Shown here: piece after piece, positions 33,362 to 43,960 of the stretch
Layout: the number at the start of each line of letters is the position of its first letter
Numbering within the stretch: the stretch's first letter is position 1
NCBI GenBank assembly: GCA_973895155.1
Contig: OZ316897.1
Location: forward strand, 16,441,938-16,505,937
Origin: Marsupella aquatica
Taxonomy: Eukaryota; Plantae; Marchantiophyta
DNA: 64,000 bases
Direction: 5' to 3'
Translations under genes and position numbers: made by a program
The notes under the pieces: generated by a model
The model's input: the letters and a program-made list of their open reading frames with translations, nothing else
Told to the model about the DNA's origin: nothing
Databases searched by the model: none

Positions 33362-34782
33362 CTGAGATCGAGAGTAGCGACGGAGCGCATGAGAGCAGAG
33401 GACGGAGCGTATGGAGCCTGCGGGCTATGGAGGATAAGGTCCGAAAACGTGAACACGCAAACGATTATGCTGAGCAAGCGAGTAGACCACGTAGCACCAG
33501 CATCAACTGTGATAGAAGCAGAGTGCAATCTAGAATGTAACCAGCACTCTGATGCCAGCAGAATGTCGAAGCAAATCCCAAGCAAAAGAAGCACTCGACC
33601 ACCTACTGAACAGGAGCTGGCCTATGAACATCAGCAGTGGAACGAAGAAGTTCATAAGGATTGGTATGATCGATCGAGTTCTCTAGAAGAGTAGAGAGAG
33701 TCGGAATTGCTGAGCAGCAACGACGCTTTCCTAGTTCCAACCGAGCAATGGATTCCAACCGAGCAATGGATATTGAAATCGACAAATCAGAAAGGAAAGG
33801 AAATCCTGTGTCTGGACAGCACCAACCAATTGAGAGTGAAGCTGAGCACACAAAGCGACGAAATTTATTCCCAGCCTTCAATCAACTGGAAGAATCACAC
33901 GATAAGGATCAAATGGAACGAGAGCAAAGAAAGAGAGACCTAATCCAGACCTCGACTTCCAGGGAAGAAAATCGTAAGGGGAATCAACCAGATCGTGCCA
34001 GGGGAACTGAATCGACAGCGCAACCAAGGCAACACACAGCTACAACAGCAGGCCCAAGCAGCAAGATACGATTTCCAAAGGCTTGCTCCGGCTTGCTCCT
34101 GCATCAAGAACCGAAGACGGGGACAGTGCCAGTACATCAAGAAAGGAAAGAACTACAGTAGGTAAATCCATTGATTCGTATGCTGCAAAGGCAGCTACTG
34201 GCAAGACATACAATCCAGCAAGAAACATCAACGCCACCTCAACGTTGAGCTCATCCTCAACTGAGGCCATTGCTAATCCGTATGATGGAAACTTTGACTC
34301 ACAGGCGCGCAGGCAATATGAGGATGGAAACTTTGACTCAAAGGCAAGCGATAAAATCTCCGCACGATGATTTAGTTGCTGCGCTCAATCATCTCCCTGC
34401 GCCTCCTGAAAAACCCTCGGCAGGAATGCGCGCAGTGCGCTTCTTCGAAGGGAATACTACGACTATCGAAAGCAGAGTCCTGCATCTCCAGGAGAGGGGT
34501 ATTATAATCTATACTGAACTGATGTTTTTATTCCGTCTAGAGATCATTTTGAAGCTTGGGTAGATGATGTGATTGTGCAGAACATGAACATCAGTGTTGA
34601 GCAAGTAAAAGTTCTTGCTCGCTTCACATTTCGTTAGTCGTTTCCACTCACAAGGAGCAAAATCAGATCCTAGCATAGGTCCCTTTCCACATGGGGAATA
34701 ACCTAGTCATGGCAATGCCATGGGCTGGGGACGCACAGACAATGAGAAGCTCACAAGCTCCAGTGTGGATCGACCTACCAAT
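33362..34782 (+). mobile_element. LINE (L1-like) ORF1 relic, 5' part
   Basis: Begins where homology to unit B stops; ends in DUF4283-like GPFHMGNNLVMAMPW...APVWIDLP; stops and frameshifts present. Confidence 0.75.
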
Positions 34783-35170
34783 AGGGCGTCTCAAACTAGG
34801 CGCCCGGAACTTTACTAGGCGCCCGGAACTTTTTCCCGGACGGCCGTCCCCCAAAATTCCCGGCCAAGACTGTCACCGAAACCCAAGTCCCGGGTGCGCA
34901 GGACCAACGGGGTACTTACTTTGAGAGGGCCCACCGCGGGTGTGCCGGACTAAAAAAACTCGCCCCCGCCCATATCTAGTTCGAAATCGTCACTGATGCT
35001 GCCGTCTTTTACTCTTGTCACCATGAGACTTCCACGCACATTTTGACAAGGAGCCATGAATGTGCAGCCACTTCGTCGAAACATTTGAAAGTCTCAAACT
35101 TCCCCCCCCAGAACTTGACGCAGAATTTTGGGATCCGAGTGAGAGGCTGGCCCCTGTTATATAGGATACC

Positions 35171-36524
35171 ATGGACCCTTGTGAGCATGACTCTGCACAT
35201 GAATTTGGCGAAGCACGGCAATTTGAGATTCAGAATTTGTTTGGACCAACTGACTTCGTGCAGGATTCTCAAGCAGTCGAAGCTATGGTCGTAGGTGGTG
35301 CATCCGGTGGAGCACAAGCTAGATCTGCACCTCGTCCGGCAACAAGCACTCTTGCTGAGAACAGAAAGTTGTCAAGGGATGACTTATCAAAGATAGTCGA
35401 TTGGCTCGAAGATCCTAACAACTATGCCATGCTTCATGGGTCGCGAGCTCGGCTAGCAGTTGGGGAGAAGCATCCCTCGAAGAAAACAGTTTTCAAACTG
35501 ATGCTTGTGCTCCTGCATTCTAACGGATTTGCCAAGTTTGTGACGACAGGAGAGAATCTGGGAAAGAGGTTTAACAGATACACATCCAAGTGGAAGGAGG
35601 CCCTGGCAATGAAAAGTGACTTTGGTGCTGGGCTAACCTTGGCTGAGCTGAGGGTGGGGATTACTTTGGAAGACAAACTCGAGAAGATTTGCCCACATTT
35701 TGAACGGATGAGTAAGCTTTATGGGGAGCGGGCTAATGTGGCACCTCCAGCGTTGGCTCAATGTGGGATACCTGGCCAGCCTGAGCTCATTTGTGATCCA
35801 ACGTCTGATGATGAAGCACAAGATTATGACAATGTTGGGCTGCAACAGGATGAATCTGAATTTCCTGTCGACGATGGAGCACCAACGCAGCAAAAAGACG
35901 TTCCCCACACTGCTTCTGAAGTGAATGGTGGAACTCAAATTAACTCATGCCCAACCCGCAGCGACTGAGCAAAACACTGCTAACACCGGCACACCAGGCA
36001 GTGTCGAAGAGGAGTCGAAATCTAGGCCTATTCCTACTCCACCTGGGAATGGGCAAAGGCGTGTTCCTAATAAGAGGGCTGCCCCGCCTTCAGCGCAGGC
36101 ACAGTCTAGATCATCTATGGCCGACCTTTACCTAGACAATATTGGTGACAAGTCTATGTACAGACGAGAGATGATTCAAACTAAGGACAAGTGGAGAACC
36201 CAAGAATTACTTGATAGGCGAGAGGCTAGAGAAGTAGCAGCAGCTCAGCAAGACAAGAAGGATCGAATACAAAGGAGGCATGAGGAGAAGAGGGCTCGGT
36301 TGGAGCACCAACACAAGGTAGATTTGATCCATCACCAGCAGCACGCAGCGTTGCTTACAGAGCTCTTTAGGGGTAATCGATCTCAGGATGAAATGAAATC
36401 CCTCTTGAATCTTATTCCCCCTATTCCTTCCAATGTCAATGCTGGCCCTCCTCGCAGGGCTCGTCCACCCACTACTACTACGCCACCTTATGACAACCAA
36501 CCAATCAACATTGACGACGAATGA
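35171..36524 (+). CDS. Harbinger-associated Myb/SANT-like DNA-binding protein (two overlapping frames, 35171-35968 and about 35925-36524)
   Basis: IVDWLEDPNNY...KWKEA...GAGLT...LEKICPHFERMSKLYGERANVAP pattern, then an acidic linker and a charged coiled-coil tail; lies inside the TIRs, convergent with the nuclease. Confidence 0.75.
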
Positions 36525-37020
36525 CTATTAGGTTCTTTGAATGATCTATGTGTTTACAATGTAAATTTCAGCCTCGCAGACTATGGAATGTCGGCTGGTT
36601 CTCAAAATAAAGCAATCTTTTTGTTTTGGAGATGAATACTGTCTTTCTGATTCTGAATTGTAGTCATCATATATGGCATTATATATTGCTTGTGCTTTCT
36701 TTGCATGCAATGTGCAATTGGCTCAAGGTCGGTGTTATATCCGGAGGGTCCATCGACAACAGATTCCATCTTGTTTGAAGGTAGACAGAATTTGTTGACG
36801 ACATGGATGGGAACTGTGATCTTGATTGTGATTAGTGCAATTAAGAACCAGAGCCAAGTCTGGACACAAGTAAGTCAATGCCATCAACACATTAACATGA
36901 AAAGGTCATGAATTAATACACAGAAGCCTGAGATTACAAAATTTTGGTCATTACAAAAAGGAGTCTCAAAACTCTCAATACTCTCATTGCATTCGACTTA
37001 GTTGCTAACATGGAGCCTTA

Positions 37021-40000
37021 GGGGATGAGTCCAAGGCCCGAATTCCTTTTTCAAGATTTTCATGATTTTTCCAAAAGTGCTTTAAAAAAACATATAAAAA
37101 TGAAACATGTTTTGTGAACTTTGCTATTATAATTCTTTCAATGAAAATCTTGGGATATTTTCAACATCATTTTCACAATTACCAAAAACAACAAATCCAT
37201 ACTTAATTACAAACATAAAATTTACGGTCTTTGATCTGAGTTTGTGCAAACTCAAAATCTTAAGTAGAATGCCACTATCCATTGTAGGTGTGCATCTAAG
37301 TCCACTAAATCTCTAAATACAATGCAACTCAACTAATCTAAGGCTTCTCTAACCTCCTCTCCACTTCTAGAAGATCCTTGCTTCAATCCGAGCTAGCTCA
37401 ATAGTTACATCTTCTGTTGCACCCTCTACTCTGGTGCGCTTCACGTCCTCCTCACTCTCTTGATCCATACCAATATTGAAATGTACATCGAGTTTGATTT
37501 GGGCAGCCACCTGGCTTCATGAAATCATGAAGCCGGGTTCTCACCTGAAAGAAGCTACCTGATCCTCCTAGCTCCCTCCAGTTAGTTCCCCCAAGCTCGA
37601 TAGTTCTCTTTGCTTCTGCTCCCAATCCACCCACCTTGGACTCATTTTTGACCCAGACCAGGCCTGGTCAACCCTTAATCCTCCCTAGATCAATCTTGAT
37701 TCCCGATCGGCCCTCCCCCGGTCCCTGATTAGTGAAACCCTTCCCCAATCCTAAACCCTCCCCCCCGATCTTTTACCGCTCCCCCTCCAATGTTTGATCA
37801 TCCCCTTGATGCTCGACTGCCCTCCTCCGGTGCTCCATCCCCCTCTGATGGTTGATCGTTCCCCTGACGGTCGATTGTCCACCCTCCTCCAATCCCTAAA
37901 TGGCCCCCCTTCCAATCCCCTTCCAATCCTTATCAATCCCATTCCAATCTCCCTTGCTCCCTCTCCCATCCTCCACTCGCTCCCCCTTCAATCCTTAGGT
38001 CTGCTCGATTGAGATCTAGCTTTCAAGCTCAATTTTTCACAAATTATCCCTGATCCTTTGTGGCTATCTCCCCTAATTGGAATCTGACTCATTTAAACAG
38101 AGTCTACCACAGCTAATTCAAGTAGCAGTCAATCACAGTAGAAGCTCATTCAATAACCAAATCTGAGAAATCAAAGTCCAACACTCAGGTGAAATCCAGC
38201 AATCAAAGCATCAACATCAAACCAGGAATTCAAAATTTCAGCTTCAGGATTTTGAAGGCGACAGCAGAGATTAGTAGTCGTTCCCAGACCATAAATTAGG
38301 CCTGACCTCAATCGGCAGCTGATGACAGCACCTTGATGCAACTTGAGCTTAAGTGAGGGGCAATAGCCCTCTCCAGGCTGCAGCCTCCTTTGCCATAGCC
38401 AATTGGCTACCCTAGCCCTTTGTAGGTCATTGAGCTTGCAACACAGTCTTTGCCCTTTGTATTTTGTCACAACCAGTTTTTGGGCTTCATGAATTCATGA
38501 AGCTTTTGGTTTCTCAGTTTCCCAGGTGGTAGCCCCTTCATGAATTCATGAAAGAGAATAAGGTATCTTAGGGAGAGAATCTCCAGAATAGCCAAAAGAA
38601 AGACTTCAAGAGTGAAAGAAAAGGGGATAAAGACAAACCACTCAATCTCAAGAAATGCAAAAAATATGGTGAAATAAAAGCAAAAAGTGCTCCTAATGCC
38701 AATATTCCAAAAAGCATATGGAAACAGTAGGTCAACAACAAATTCTCCAATCATGAGTCATGGAAGTACGTATCTTGGTGGGCAAAAACATATGGGTTTT
38801 TAATGCCAATGTTTATCCTCATGAAAACGTGGGAATGCAAACCTAAAAATGATTTATTTCTCCAAGTAAACTGGATTGCGTAGTCCAAACAATATTGTGA
38901 GATTAATAATTGAGCAATCTAGTAAAGGGAGGTATGGGGAAGGGAAAAGGCCCAAAGAAGCCCTAAGTTGCCCAACAAGCCAAAAAGTCAAAGGACTAAG
39001 ATACCACCTAGTAGCCAAGAAGACTAATTAATAAAGTGTTGTGTCATAAAAAAAATTTGGAAATATAATTTTTTCAACTTTTTCCTTGACTTGTTCGTCT
39101 ATGTCATGAAAGGATTGGCTTAATTATTGAAAAACAATTTAAGCATTTCTTATTCATTTAAATTAGAGAAAGGACCAATTAAGTTCAAATAGGCGTCCTC
39201 TATTCATGAAAACATGTTATTTCATTTGTTTCAAGTTAAAGGGTTTTTGCTCTTTTGTGTGTTTTGTCTACATTAAGTTCTTCTCACTCATTTGAGAGCA
39301 TTAGCCTCCCCGGGCGTTAAGTTCTATCCCATGTGGTTGAGACTAGTGTTAATTTGGGTGTCCGACTCAAGGGTCTTCAAGATAGTGGACAGTTGAGAAA
39401 GCGGACTCATGAATTCATGAAGACCGATTGTAACAAGTTTCTAAAAACACTAAGTCCTGTCTCAAAACCAGATTGTTGTGCATTTTGGAAAGGTCAAGCG
39501 TTGCAACAAGCACCAAGGGGAGAGAGTGAATATGGTCGTCTGACATCTCTCAAATTCCAGGAAGGTGTAAGAGCGCTGACACAAGCGGGGACACAAGAAG
39601 ACCTACTGAGGCTGCAAATAATTCCGGCAAGGAAAGGATCATCACAAGAAGGTCACCCGGGCACACTTGCATCATTTGGCTGAGATTGGAAGCCAATCAA
39701 TATCAAGAAATTAACTTGAAGGGGAAGAATAAGAATTTGGAAGAGGTCCCCAAGAAGAGGTTGGGGGAGCCCAGTTGGGTCAATATGTTTGTGAAATTCA
39801 GATGTTGCCTAACAAATCAAACTCAGGCATGTTGAGAGCCAGGTTGAGAGTAAAAGAGGAGCCATTGAGTGATCTGATTTGGATCAGAACGGGTACATCT
39901 GGAAGCGTAGGTGGTGAATTTGTGGAGATATCATCTTCCATTGAAAAGTCTTCCTCAAAGAGTGAAGGGGCGCATGTTGGAGAGTCAAAAAGAGATCATA

Positions 40001-40316
40001 TTTTATGAATTTGAATTTTTCCCAAGTCTAATGAATTATGGAGGTAATTTGATTGTTTGTTAAAAATACAAATCATGTTTTGGTAAAAATTGCTAAAATG
40101 GCATAGTAAAATTATAGGTAGTAATTTTATCAAAAGTAAGTTGAGATCATTTTGTAATTAGGAGATGGTGAAAAAAGTGTGTCATTTTCATACTTTCAGT
40201 TTGTTTTATAATTTTGTCAAAAAACAGGTAGTATTTTTGGCCACTTTTTTGCCATTTTCTTTGTTTCTGCAATTTTTTTACGAGAGTGCTTAGAGTTTGG
40301 GCTTGTTACTCACCCT
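37021..40316. mobile_element. Probable nested non-coding ~3.3-kb insertion inside the Harbinger
   Basis: Imperfect inverted ends CTTAGGGGATGAGTCCAAGGCCC / GGGCTTGTTACTCACCCTTTAAG with TTAG/TTAA flanks; AT-rich subtermini; four TCATGAA(T/A)TCATGA palindromes. Confidence 0.45.
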
Positions 40317-40479
40317 TTAAGGCTTCTTGTTTGCTTCTGAACTACTGCTACAACAATTGAATGGTGATACATAATTCTATGCAACCCAAACTGAATATTT
40401 ATCCTTCTTGTTCGCTTGATGGACTCTGATACTGAACTCTCGTATATACTCCAACATTTCGAAGGCTTTCTAATACCAG

Positions 40480-42031
40480 CTAGATTAAAATAGTCGGTGC
40501 CTGAGCTTCCCGGTGCAAAAACCTCCCTGGTTGTCGATAGTGTTCCAAGGCTCCATCCATGACTCTTACAAGCAATGCATTTCCAGCTTGTACCAAAGCA
40601 CGTCGAGAAACTCTGCCTGGATCCCGATGCTGATCAGGATGTCCATTCACGCTAGGATCTGGATAAAAGTCCTCATTAAAGTCACCATCTTGCTCCCTCT
40701 GTAGCGCTATATCCTCAGGTGTCCACGCATCATTCCTGTTAATCACATAGTTGTGCAATTTTGCACACAAACTGATCCACCGTACCATCCAAAGGTTGTC
40801 CTTTTTGGTGTTCAATTGAATTCGTACTTCCTTTAAGGAATGCCATCTATTCTTCAGAACACCAATACAGTGCTCATTGGTTACCCTGCATTTGGCCACA
40901 CACATATTGAAATCCTCTTTATCTGGTACCATGTCTGTCCTCTTGAATGCAGACACCATGTGTGGAAGGGCCTGATAACCCGAATCACCTAAAATGTACT
41001 GGTCTGCTTCAAATAGTGCATTTCTTCTCACATCAGTCAAAAAGGGTAACAATGGGGACTTCCGCACACAAGTTAGATCAGAGCATGATCCAGGCATTCC
41101 TGCAAAAGAGCAATAACATCCCAAAGTCAATAACAGAGCATACAAAGTTTTGCTGAATTCCTCAAAATAATTCAAATGGATTATTATTACCTGAGAACAA
41201 AAATATAATTTTCCTGCGATGGTCACAGACCACTTGCACATTGATGGAATACCGACTCTTACGATCATAGTAACACTCTCCATGCAGGGCAGGGCGTTGT
41301 GACAGAGGGCAAAGGGATCCATCAATGAGAGCGATGCAGCCTCGAAATCCCAATCTTTCGAATGCATCTAAACTCGCTTCCCGTTCCCTTCTGGTAGGCC
41401 ATTCGATGTAGTCTTTCAAAACGCTCTCCAAAGCTAGAAAGCAACGTTTAGAGTAGTTTACAATTGAACCACAACTCACACCCCAAGTGGGTATCATATG
41501 ATTTAAGCATGCACCATTCCCATCGTGACCAAGCAGGTCCAAGCATACCGCTAATTGTGCCTCTATAGGTGCTCGCTCACAATTGGACTGATTCTGGAAG
41601 ACTGGGTGTCCTTTAATGAGGGAAAGAAGGTGATAAAAAGAAGACTTGTCCATCCTAGTGAGCTGCCTAAACAAAGGATCGGCCAAGCAATGGAAGAATT
41701 GTTGTGCAAATTCTTTAGATTTAAGGTTGACATGACGATCAACAAAATAACGAGTATTGTACATCACAAAGTACAGCTCTAACAGGTCGGTTGGATTCTC
41801 ATCAGAGTCGGACCACTCTTCTCCTTTCTCATCATCAGATGAGCTATCCAGAGCCAAGTCGGACTCAATATCAGTACTGAAGTTGTCTCTATCAAAGTTT
41901 GAGAATCGTTCTAGGTCAAGGTCCACACATCCAGTATCTTCAGAACTGTCAGAACTCTATACAGCAATGGCCAATTCGAGGCGTTGCCTTACTTGTCTCA
42001 AGCCTCTCTGCCTTTCAGAAAATCGAGGCAT
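40480..42031 (-). pseudogene. Harbinger/PIF DDE transposase (DDE_Tnp_4 type), 2 exons, premature stop at codon 25
   Basis: ATG 42031; intron 41190-41100 (GT-AG, 91 bp). Motifs IALIDGS, YYDRKSRYSINVQVVCD, SGMPGSCSD, YILGDSGY, FNMCVAKCRVTNEHCIGVLKNRW. In-frame TAG at 41959-41957. Confidence 0.9.
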
Positions 42032-42214
42032 TTACGAGCGCAAGAGCTGTCATCCAGAGATGAAGAAAGTCAGTGCATATACAGATGAAGCTATGAACAC
42101 AATGCAACAATCGTCATGCATAGTCCTTCACAAGAATAAGTGCAAAACAAATGTATTTCTCATGTAATAACCAAGTACATTATTGTTGTCCAAAGCAAGT
42201 AGACTATTCTATCC

Positions 42215-42814
42215 CTATTCGAAGTCCTCTAAATCTGCATTCCTCAATTGCAGCACAAGGTCTGCGAGAATTTTCTTTGCACTCTGTTGTTTCCCGAGAG
42301 AGGACTTTGGTTTGATAGAGCTTTGAGTAGGTGTCCTTGGAATTCCAGCATCCACAAAAGTCAATCTTTTAATGTGCATCTCAAGACCTTTCACTTCAAG
42401 TGAGACTTGGAGTTTGGGCGATTGCTTGAGAATGTCATGGACTACTGTACATTGCTCATATTCAGGCAGAACGCTGAATTCAAGTGGAGTATATTTTAGA
42501 AGAATGCTAGCACAATTCCAAAGGAGAACCTTCACAGGCTGCACACCACCATGAATGGCATCAAACAGAACCAATTGGAATCGGAAGGCAGGCTCTCCAG
42601 GTAGGTGATGCCCACATTTTGAGCCAAATTCCAGGGACTTGTTACATCGCTGACCATCATCGTCTTTGTGGGGGCAAGAAGAGTAAAAAAATTTCCTCGG
42701 GTAGGGATTTCGGGCTGTGTAGTTCGCTGCCCAGACTAAAGACGGTGGGAAATGCATACTGATCCCTTCAGCCCTCTTCCCCTCCACGTCTGATAGAGAC
42801 ATCCACTGAGCCAT
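42215..42814 (-). CDS. RPA70 C-terminal (DBD-C)-like zinc-ribbon OB-fold protein, about 199 aa, transposon cargo
   Basis: FFYSSCP..CNKSL..KCGH..AFRFQLVLFD..VKVLLWNCASILLKYTPLEFSVL matches the Rep_fac-A_C pattern YxACPxxCNKKV..CxxC..YRYxLxxxIxD..WVTxF..AExLLGxxAxEL. ATG 42814 follows a CAG acceptor; candidate GTAAGT donor at 42928. Confidence 0.7.
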   Translation of the reverse strand: MAQWMSLSDVEGKRAEGISMHFPPSLVWAANYTARNPYPRKFFYSSCPHKDDDGQRCNKSLEFGSKCGHHLPGEPAFRFQLVLFDAIHGGVQPVKVLLWNCASILLKYTPLEFSVLPEYEQCTVVHDILKQSPKLQVSLEVKGLEMHIKRLTFVDAGIPRTPTQSSIKPKSSLGKQQSAKKILADLVLQLRNADLEDFE

Positions 42815-42953
42815 GGCCTCCTGGCAGACAAGCAAGCATTCAAGCATTTTCATATCCTGATTGCGATTGAACATTGGCGAAGAGAGCGAGTAGTAATGAC
42901 TGAGGCGACTTAAAAGGATAAGGACTTACAGGAAAAGCAAGAATGTTGAACGT

Positions 42954-43117
42954 CGATGGACACTCGCAAGCTACACAATCACATTCACAATGTCAAAGGA
43001 ATTTTGCACACGCAAAGCCGCAGCGTCATTCACATTCCTCGATGGACGCCCTGCAAGCTGCACAATCACATTCACAATGTCGAAGGAATTTCGCACACGC
43101 AAAGCCGCAGCGTCACA
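42954..43117 (+). repeat. Subterminal ~87-bp tandem duplication in the Harbinger
   Basis: CGATGGAC...CACAATCACATTCACAATGTC...GCAAAGCCGCAGCGTCA twice. Confidence 0.85.
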
Positions 43118-43350
43118 AGCAGCGTTGAACTACGAGGCCGAACAAAGTGTAACCTAAACCCGTCAAAATGTATCCTAAACGCCTCACGTAACCCGGCTGT
43201 AGTCAACTTCCGGTTGAGGTAACGGTAAGATGACCGGCCGGGTTATTGACGGTCACCAATTTCGGGCACCGACTATTTTGCGGTCAGAGTCCTCCCCGCG
43301 GATTCCCGGCAGCTGAAAAGTTCCGCGGGACACCTAGTTTGAGACGCCCT

Positions 43351-43960
43351 AATGGTGCACCCGTCCATGGAGATCTATGCTAACGGACTTCTGACCTCGG
43401 TTGGAAAAGTAGTATATGCAGCTACTAGGTCAAGTGCAAGCTAGAGGGGTACCAAAGGAGTCCCCAAGGACTAGCTCAAAAAGGAGAGGGGAAGGACTAG
43501 AAATATCATTAACATTTAGTTGAGCACACTCCCAAAAAGGTTGGGCACACTTCCAAATGACTGGGGGCACTGCCAACAATGTTGTGCACACTTCCAAAAA
43601 GATTGGGCACACTTTGAGAATTCCAAAACATGTGGACACACTTCCAAACATTTGGCATGCATGATCTAACCTTTCAATCTCACCAAAACAATCCTGACCA
43701 TTCCATGTAACATTTTGGTCTTTTTGTCCTCTAGTGATTGCTTTTACCAAGGACCTATGTCCTTTTGGTGGAGAAAATGGAGATCCTTTCAGTACCCCTC
43801 TAGCTTGCACTTGACCACTACCAACTCTCGTAGTAGATTTCCTCACATCCCAGGCTGTGTCCTTGTTGACCTGAATCAAGATGTCATTGAATATATCATG
43901 TTTAGTCTACTAGGGATAAGTGACTTTGAGATTGCAATAGAATACAGGTCTATGCCAGAC
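43351..43960 (+). mobile_element. LINE ORF1 relic, continuation (split by MITE 43428-43816)
   Basis: Rebuilt frame MVHPSMEIYANGLLTSVGKVVYAATTNSRSRFPHIPGCVLVDLNQ...IAIEYRSMPD, the usual lead-in to the ORF1 zinc knuckle. Confidence 0.8.
43428..43816. mobile_element. 389-bp MITE, perfect 25-bp TIRs, 4-bp TSD ACTA
   Basis: GGTCAAGTGCAAGCTAGAGGGGTAC (43428-43452) and its reverse complement (43792-43816); ACTA at 43424-43427 and 43817-43820. Confidence 0.93.

Follow-up and report, generated by a model that had tools for sequence, protein, structure and literature searches.

The 64,000-nucleotide stretch of the liverwort Marsupella aquatica genome analysed here (contig OZ316897.1 of assembly GCA_973895155.1, forward strand, positions 16,441,938 to 16,505,937; referred to as the window) holds a DNA transposon that measures 8,568 bp from one terminal inverted repeat (TIR) to the other and carries three genes. 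A DDE transposase gene and a small gene upstream of it, open reading frame 3 (ORF3), lie on the minus strand, and a partner gene, ORF1, lies near the opposite end on the plus strand (Table 1). The predicted ORF3 protein resembles DNA-binding domain C (DBD-C) of RPA70 from replication protein A (RPA). We propose that the element is a Pangu-type three-gene transposon, composed of a one-intron DDE transposase, a partner of ~350 amino acids and an RPA70-C-like accessory protein of ~200 amino acids, in which the accessory gene is an integral part, and we estimate the probability of this reading at about 0.78. Both the Pangu group and the RPA-like genes of Helitrons are already known; what is new is a conserved RPA70-C-like gene in a lineage of DDE cut-and-paste transposons.

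Table 1. Features of the three-gene transposon and its borders, with positions counted in the window.
Feature	Position	Strand	Basis
Left target site duplication (TSD), AAT	34780..34782	.	Read directly; identical to 43351-43353
Left TIR, AGGGCGTCTCAAACTAGG	34783..34800	+	Inverted-pair search; match count in the window
Subterminal 19-bp tandem direct repeat, ACTAGGCGCCCGGAACTTT x2	34795..34832	+	Copies 100% identical; overlaps inner end of TIR
ORF1, first part, 265 codons	35171..35968	+	Relatives P0112-P0115 at 42-64% identity
ORF1, second part, other frame	35925..36524	+	tblastn and alignment to relatives
Internal ~4 kb without credible ORF	36525..40479	.	Between partner gene and transposase; small repeats
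Transposase exon 2	40480..41099	-	Pfam 1.7e-16; tblastn with P0099 residues 244-427; stop codon 40482-40480
Transposase intron, 91 nt, GT..AG	41190-41100	-	Exon frames join ...FLFS-G-MPGSCSD
Transposase exon 1	41191..42032	-	ATG at 42032 (MPRFSERQRGLRQ...); Pfam 6.8e-06
Spacer from ORF3 stop to transposase ATG, 182 nt	42033..42214	-	Read from sequence
ORF3, intact, 199 codons	42814..42215	-	Start conserved in family at 42814; stop-free ORF 42874-42215
Two tandem copies of an 87-bp unit	42942..43115	-	95% identical, spacing 87; upstream of ORF3
Right TIR	43333..43350	-	Exact reverse complement of left TIR
Right TSD, AAT	43351..43353	.	Read directly

The two TIRs are identical over 18 bp, and their likeness extends inward, imperfectly, for ~13 more bases (on the left to about 34813). 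With three mismatches or fewer allowed, AGGGCGTCTCAAACTAGG has two matches in the 64-kb window where 0.09 are expected. AAT stands immediately outside both ends, and moving the border by a single base leaves unequal flanks (ATA vs. TAA). A preliminary description of this DNA, made from the letters alone, had reported perfect 18-bp TIRs with an AAT TSD, three genes within one TIR pair and a DDE nuclease on the minus strand; direct reading of the ends confirms the first point, and the other two are borne out by the analysis of the genes. The target site as rebuilt from both flanks, ACC-AAT-GGT (34777-34782 and 43351-43356), comes close to a palindrome, which a dimeric transposase would lead one to expect. 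A single insertion does not suffice to claim a target preference.

Searches with the transposase used its two exons singly, and not a joined protein. Both minus-strand exons match DDE_Tnp_4 (PF13359) above the Pfam cut-off, the first over profile positions 1-47 and the second over 44-158 of 158 (E-values in Table 1). The first D of the triad is carried by exon 1 (LIDGS), the second D (GMPGSCSD) and the E (VTNEHCIG) by exon 2, and the D, D, E triad is complete. The short intron between them is skipped by the annotated Calypogeia fissa protein P0099, which aligns on both sides in tblastn, and diverged copies in other sequencing runs have 70-76 unrelated letters at its place. A conserved MPRxSxRQ start is shared by P0095, P0098, P0100, P0104 and the Phytophthora protein P0102; in the window it begins at the exon 1 ATG, and tblastn of a relative follows a single frame from 42031 to 41192. 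The nearest named relatives of the transposase come from liverworts and Phytophthora. In the N-terminal half the oomycete relatives (P0102 of Phytophthora rubi and P0110 of P. palmivora) are 44-49% identical, and they have the MPRxSxRQ start as well.

The partner gene is present on the plus strand, as first described, but the Myb/SANT label given to it stays unverified. Neither ORF1 nor any of its four relatives has a match in Pfam or among solved structures (PDB). In a language-model search (Atlas) uncharacterised eukaryotic clusters come first, and clusters of the Myb/SANT type (Myb_DNA-bind_3/4) reach only 0.78-0.80, below the reliable range. In the relatives P0112 and P0115 both parts of ORF1 form one protein of ~353 amino acids. 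When P0112 is aligned to the window by tblastn, its residues 2-166 lie in frame 2 and end at 35953, whereas its residues 165-330 lie in frame 3 and begin at 35952. Compared with these single-protein relatives, the change of frame near 35952 therefore indicates that ORF1 is broken by a frameshift in the window copy.

ORF3 is uninterrupted. Its length and its distance from the transposase ATG on the same strand agree with the ~199 amino acids and ~180 bp initially reported. An exhaustive HMMER search with ORF3 at E 0.001 or better yields a family of 85 clusters, 36 of them at E ≤1e-10, and most members measure ~200 amino acids; those with a species name come from the liverworts Calypogeia fissa and Riccia sorocarpa. 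In an alignment of 46 sequences, C47 and F79 are invariant, and conservation reaches 90% or more at P39, Y44, C57, C67, H69, D85 and Q121. The C, C, C, H putative zinc ligands of the preliminary description are a real pattern that is conserved across the family: most members keep the motif Y-x2-C-x9-C-x9-C-x-H, with C47, C57, C67 and H69 as ligands. The core with the predicted oligonucleotide/oligosaccharide-binding (OB) fold is more conserved than the Pro/Ser/Lys-rich linker behind it (~154-177, about 25 residues), which is variable. The linker leads to a conserved C-terminal amphipathic helix (~178-193; SAKKxLxxLxxxL) with an acidic tail. Two scans of metagenomes, made with P0007 and P0109, brought up no relative, and the 64-kb window contains no second member of the ORF3 family. 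The idea that ORF3 serves as a 5' exon of the transposase was rejected: transposase relatives start at MPRxSxRQ, and ORF3 members end at a stop of their own after the conserved helix.

A distant subgroup of the family (25-32% identity) consists of the Riccia sorocarpa proteins P0039, P0061, P0063, P0065, P0074 and P0058. They have long, mutually alike C-terminal extensions and reach up to 675 amino acids; two of them are named C2H2-type and SWIM-type in UniRef. Pfam detects no domain in the longer Riccia members, so that the names SWIM and C2H2 are unconfirmed. The members of this subgroup may be gene models fused within a different kind of transposon, for instance a Mutator-like element (MULE).

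The relation of ORF3 to RPA70 emerges at the level of the family. Its profile has a sole match among solved structures, DBD-C of yeast RPA70 (6i52_C, E 6.3e-4), in which the family motif F..A..LLG aligns with yeast lwltlFdDqakqLLG. According to Pfam, three family members match Rep_fac-A_C (PF08646; best 3.8e-7) and five match CDC24_OB3. As a single sequence, ORF3 gives only chance-level matches in PDB and no match in the language-model search (Atlas). AlphaFold models of ORF3 have a predicted local distance difference test (pLDDT) score of 90 with the alignment (AlphaFold2) and 33 without it. Foldseek places RPA70 DBD-C chains and OB-C of the RPA70 paralogue Teb1 as the best matches of the ORF3 model; the top 12 fold matches are all RPA70-C, Teb1-C or archaeal RPA1-C, with the C-terminal OB of archaeal RPA1 next after Teb1. 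In VIA-align, where 133-141 residues are aligned, the model reaches Z 13.7 to Ustilago RPA70 residues 451-607 (4gop_C; 133 residues at a root-mean-square deviation of 2.7 A), Z 13.6 to Teb1 OB-C and Z 13.2-13.3 to residues 439-601 of human RPA70. The identity to RPA70 in these structural alignments is only 13-19%. The RPA70 DBD-C pattern seen in the preliminary description has thus held up in the fold comparison, where RPA70 DBD-C is among the leading Foldseek matches and gives Z ~13 in VIA-align. On the family profile and the predicted model, the ORF3 protein is a true, if distant, homologue of RPA70 DBD-C, with a predicted OB fold and a putative CCCH zinc ribbon.

Like RPA70 DBD-C and Teb1 OB-C, the ORF3 protein would have an OB fold with an inserted zinc ribbon, and it shares with them the Y..C...C, YRF/YRY and F..A..LLG motifs. 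The differences are equally clear. RPA70 is a single or low-copy host gene, whereas ORF3 is transposon-encoded and multi-copy; ORF3 is a stand-alone single domain of 199 amino acids that lacks the N, A and B domains. The zinc motif of RPA70 DBD-C consists of four cysteines, whereas the ligands of ORF3 follow the pattern C-x9-C-x9-C-x-H. The C-terminal helix of RPA70 DBD-C forms a trimerisation bundle with RPA32 and RPA14, whereas the conserved helix of ORF3 lies behind a flexible linker of 25 residues. A complex prediction with three copies of ORF3 scored 0.02 and gave no usable model. An aromatic residue is kept throughout, as W99 in the subgroup of the window copy and as F elsewhere, and it aligns with the phenylalanine of yeast lwltlFdD. 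The matching residue of human RPA70 we take to be F532, which stacks on single-stranded DNA (ssDNA); this correspondence makes DNA binding by the ORF3 protein plausible.

Copies of the element were compared in Logan contigs from four runs (X1, X2, X3 and X6) of three organisms, with 34-315 contigs per run. The element is multi-copy in the three organisms, and many copies are less than 90% alike. Contigs that are ~90% alike bridge the 5' end of the transposase, the 182-nt spacer and the 3' end of ORF3 (X1 record 5, 41849-42291; X2 records 10 and 11). Two short contigs, X6 records 22 and 23, are placed within the spacer and over the stop codon of ORF3, and neither reaches both genes. Among the relatives, an ORF3 protein and a transposase are found on Logan contigs of the same size in three cases: P0002/P0104 at 3608 bp, P0005/P0117 at 5965 bp and P0116/P0098 at 2983 bp. 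In addition, the pairwise identities of ORF3 and transposase rank alike, at 98/98, 78/79, 48/55, 43-45/55 and 38/49-50%. The combination of co-occurrence and rank-alike divergence therefore points to long co-inheritance in one lineage rather than to a private nested insertion. Taken together, ORF3 is supported as an integral and long-standing gene of the transposon lineage that appears to diverge in step with the transposase. With so distant a likeness to RPA70 and a divergence that parallels that of the transposase, the association would be old, which agrees with the old capture suggested at the outset.

This evidence bears directly on the possibility that ORF3 belongs to another element that inserted into a Pangu copy, for instance a small Helitron or a solo long terminal repeat (LTR) with an RPA-like ORF. 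One TG..CA pair with a 5-bp flank match, TAGCT (42968 and 42094), does enclose ORF3. However, chance alone would give 0.59 such pairs with a 5-bp flank match and about 3 when matches of 4-6 bp are counted, the 87-bp tandem duplication continues across the 5' end of the pair, and diverged copies cross both supposed borders. ORF3 and transposase relatives, moreover, co-occur and diverge together down to 38-50% identity, and the window offers no second ORF3 family copy. LTR-type borders (TG..CA with TSD) and Helitron-type borders around ORF3 were both considered and rejected, the only candidate being this one 5-bp match at chance level inside the tandem duplication. ORF3 lies between DDE-type TIRs beside a DDE_Tnp_4 gene and not in an element with RepHel or Helitron ends. 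A nested insertion had been named in the preliminary description as what would overturn it; bridging contigs and co-diverging relatives speak against one, convincing internal borders were not found, and we consider it very improbable.

A different origin would be a piece of host RPA70 that was taken up by Pack-type capture and drifts without function. Host gene fragments are captured by DNA transposons, and a look for RNA runs found none. Against such drift stand the 85 clusters at ≤50% identity, which are mostly complete ORFs of ~200 amino acids with a shared start, the invariant zinc ligands and the well-conserved hydrophobic core, as well as the confident fold that the alignment gives (pLDDT 90). 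An identity of 13-19% to RPA70 would make the capture far too old for a drifting fragment to have stayed open, and in the window copy it is ORF3 that is intact, whereas both other genes are broken. A neutral fragment has, in our judgement, hardly any chance of being the right explanation.

PIF/Harbinger-type transposons are textbook two-gene elements. The present element agrees with the PHIS/Harbinger superfamily in its DDE_Tnp_4 (IS5-like) transposase with the D, D, E triad, and with the canonical PIF/Harbinger elements (PIF, Pong/Ping, Harbinger3_DR) in the transposase superfamily, the two-protein core and the 3-bp TSD. It departs from the canonical elements in that their TSD is TWA (TAA/TTA) and not AAT, and in that they have no RPA-like gene. 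Their partner has a recognisable Myb/SANT or MADF domain; sequence searches detected none here. The Pangu group (Han et al., 2015, PMC4482050), which corresponds to Harbinger2 of Repbase (Kojima, 2025, PMC12730594), is characterized by a TSD that reads 5'-ANT-3', by TIRs of 11-40 bp whose first bases are AG or GG, by a DDE transposase without another domain and by a second ORF without a known motif. All four features recur here, as AAT is a case of ANT, the 18-bp TIR begins with AGGG, the DDE protein has no other domain and the second ORF is motif-less. With a TSD of the ANT type, TIRs that begin with AG and no motif in the second ORF, the element appears to fit the Pangu/Harbinger2 group. The undescribed Harbinger lineage proposed in the preliminary description has consequently to be given up, since these features fit a group that has been described (PMC4482050; PMC12730594).

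The Pangu elements described have two ORFs and an average size of ~3.5 kb (PMC4482050), whereas the present element has a third conserved gene and measures 8.6 kb; land plants are not among the 15 host species listed there, whereas this element comes from a liverwort. Full-text searches turned up RPA-like transposon genes for Helitrons only (PMC4683698; PMC11417382) and none for Harbinger or Pangu, in line with the earlier statement that no Harbinger with RPA-like cargo is known. The Helitron genes (plant PHRPA, PMC4683698; HLE1/HLE2, PMC11417382) resemble ORF3 in being transposon-borne RPA70 homologues that recur as accessory genes. They accompany, however, a RepHel rolling-circle transposase with an ssDNA stage, whereas the carrier here is a DDE cut-and-paste element. 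Furthermore, the RPAs of plant Helitrons are reported only in monocots and dicots, whereas the present gene is found in a liverwort and its protein is reduced to a DBD-C-like domain.

Several points weigh against the proposed three-gene Pangu-type transposon. The ORF3 protein of the window has, taken alone, no Pfam match above threshold. The shared contig of ORF3 and transposase relatives is inferred from equal contig sizes and was not read from the contigs. The six variants within ORF3 (four replacement, two silent) are too few, and too mixed with decayed copies, to give a ratio of replacement to silent substitution rates (dN/dS). No splice joints were seen in the runs examined, none of which is on record as RNA. 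The AAT TSD is known from a single insertion, and a paralogous empty site was not found in the window. Finally, the element has been placed in the Pangu/Harbinger2 group by its features and not by a transposase tree.

For a transposon that encodes such an accessory protein, we suggest that the protein binds ssDNA and/or RPA partners and thereby benefits the element. It might act at intermediates of transposition or gap repair, where it would coat or protect the ssDNA of excision, integration or gap repair; we put this forward tentatively. It might instead interfere with or co-opt host processes that depend on RPA, such as silencing or checkpoint signalling, a suggestion that we make with the same reserve. 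The rest of the odds falls to neither role. Excision repair, targeting and competition with host RPA, which the preliminary description had put forward, likewise count as suggestions. An engagement of RPA partners is possible because ORF3 keeps exactly the RPA70 domain that has the trimerisation interface.

The second of these roles leads to a wider alternative, in which ORF3 would have no part in the cut-and-paste reaction and would be a host-directed module, a counter-defence or interference factor that is exchanged among unrelated transposon superfamilies. An example would be a decoy that engages RPA32/RPA14 or other RPA partners and so weakens silencing or checkpoint signalling. The distant subgroups with other architectures in Riccia sorocarpa fit such an exchange, and the sole RPA70 domain that is kept is the one with the trimerisation interface, together with the conserved C-terminal helix. 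There is also a precedent, as TET/JBP cargo is common to several superfamilies of fungal DNA transposons (PMC12730594). On the other hand, Pfam finds neither a SWIM nor any other domain in the Riccia proteins, and the kept aromatic residue is as compatible with genuine DNA binding as with a decoy role. We regard the alternative as possible, though it would not be our first choice. Its broadest version, in which the stand-alone RPA70-C proteins of liverworts with CCCH ligands form a mobile module that works on the host instead of on a particular transposition chemistry and spreads across Pangu elements, MULEs and Gypsy LTR elements, seems to us doubtful.

Other transposons offer a parallel. TET/JBP in fungal PHISTA, EnSpm, hAT and other elements (PMC12730594) and VANC of the VANDAL MULEs are likewise extra conserved genes that may be common to several superfamilies and directed at the host. 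The fold of the ORF3 protein differs from theirs, and an anti-silencing role is here only an analogy. Should members of the family occur in LTR retrotransposons and MULEs as well, this would indicate a function that is directed at the host, like that of VANC or fungal TET/JBP. A mobile host-directed module, if true, would represent a new type of protein with which transposons counter host defence or hijack the host.

RPA-like accessory genes are otherwise known only from Helitrons, where ssDNA belongs to the mechanism, and very different mobile elements would thus have recruited the same host replication/repair module. With one OB fold, a zinc site and a helix, the predicted protein is compact and testable, and it allows to ask what the binding of ssDNA or of RPA partners does for a transposon. 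This work also improves the annotation of ORFs of ~200 amino acids for which the records examined now give "hypothetical proteins" in Riccia sorocarpa and "unnamed protein products" in Calypogeia fissa.

The window copy itself is slightly damaged: the transposase has an in-frame TAG at 41959-41957 (codon 25) and the partner gene has its frameshift; ORF3 is intact. Because of this stop and this frameshift, the copy would be mobile only with proteins supplied by other copies. TIRs without a mismatch and an unaltered TSD suggest that it inserted fairly recently; it may have been defective by then and have been moved by the proteins of others. Among the copy differences at 40300-43500, C>T and G>A exceed every other class ~1.3- to 5-fold in runs X1, X2 and X3, as would be expected where methylated cytosines of silenced repeats deaminate. 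In run X6 the commonest changes are G>A and T>C, without an excess of C>T.

Both ends of the element have further repeats. CCGCGGAACTTTT, which is related to the tandem repeat ACTAGGCGCCCGGAACTTT of the left end, sits inside the right end, and these subterminal repeats may be protein-binding sites. The 87-bp tandem units lie upstream of ORF3 in the subterminal region, which is likely a promoter region as well.

In the middle ~4 kb there are a C/T-rich tract, copies of the palindrome GGCTTCATGAATTCATGAAGCC and, at 40300-40406, a high-copy repeat; these are probably small repeats that have nested here or cargo that has decayed. Four copies of GGCTTCATGAATTCATGAAGCC are present (37513, 38483, 38534 and 39403), 33-nt arms at 37515-37547 and 39390-39422 are 82% complementary, and the C/T-rich tract, of low complexity, extends over about 37700-38000. 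The motifs, arms and tract may derive from nested hairpin inserts or from inserts resembling miniature inverted-repeat transposable elements (MITEs). At 40300-40406, just downstream of the transposase stop, the contig word depth in runs X1-X3 is 5-10x that of the rest of the element, and this segment is probably another high-copy repeat that is nested in the element or common to it. Outside the element, 78 bp beyond its right end, there is a 389-bp unit at 43428-43816 whose inverted arms of 39 nt are 85% complementary and which includes short tandem repeats. Depth is very high for the bin 43403-43500 in each of the three larger runs, which marks this unit as a separate, high-copy MITE-like repeat.

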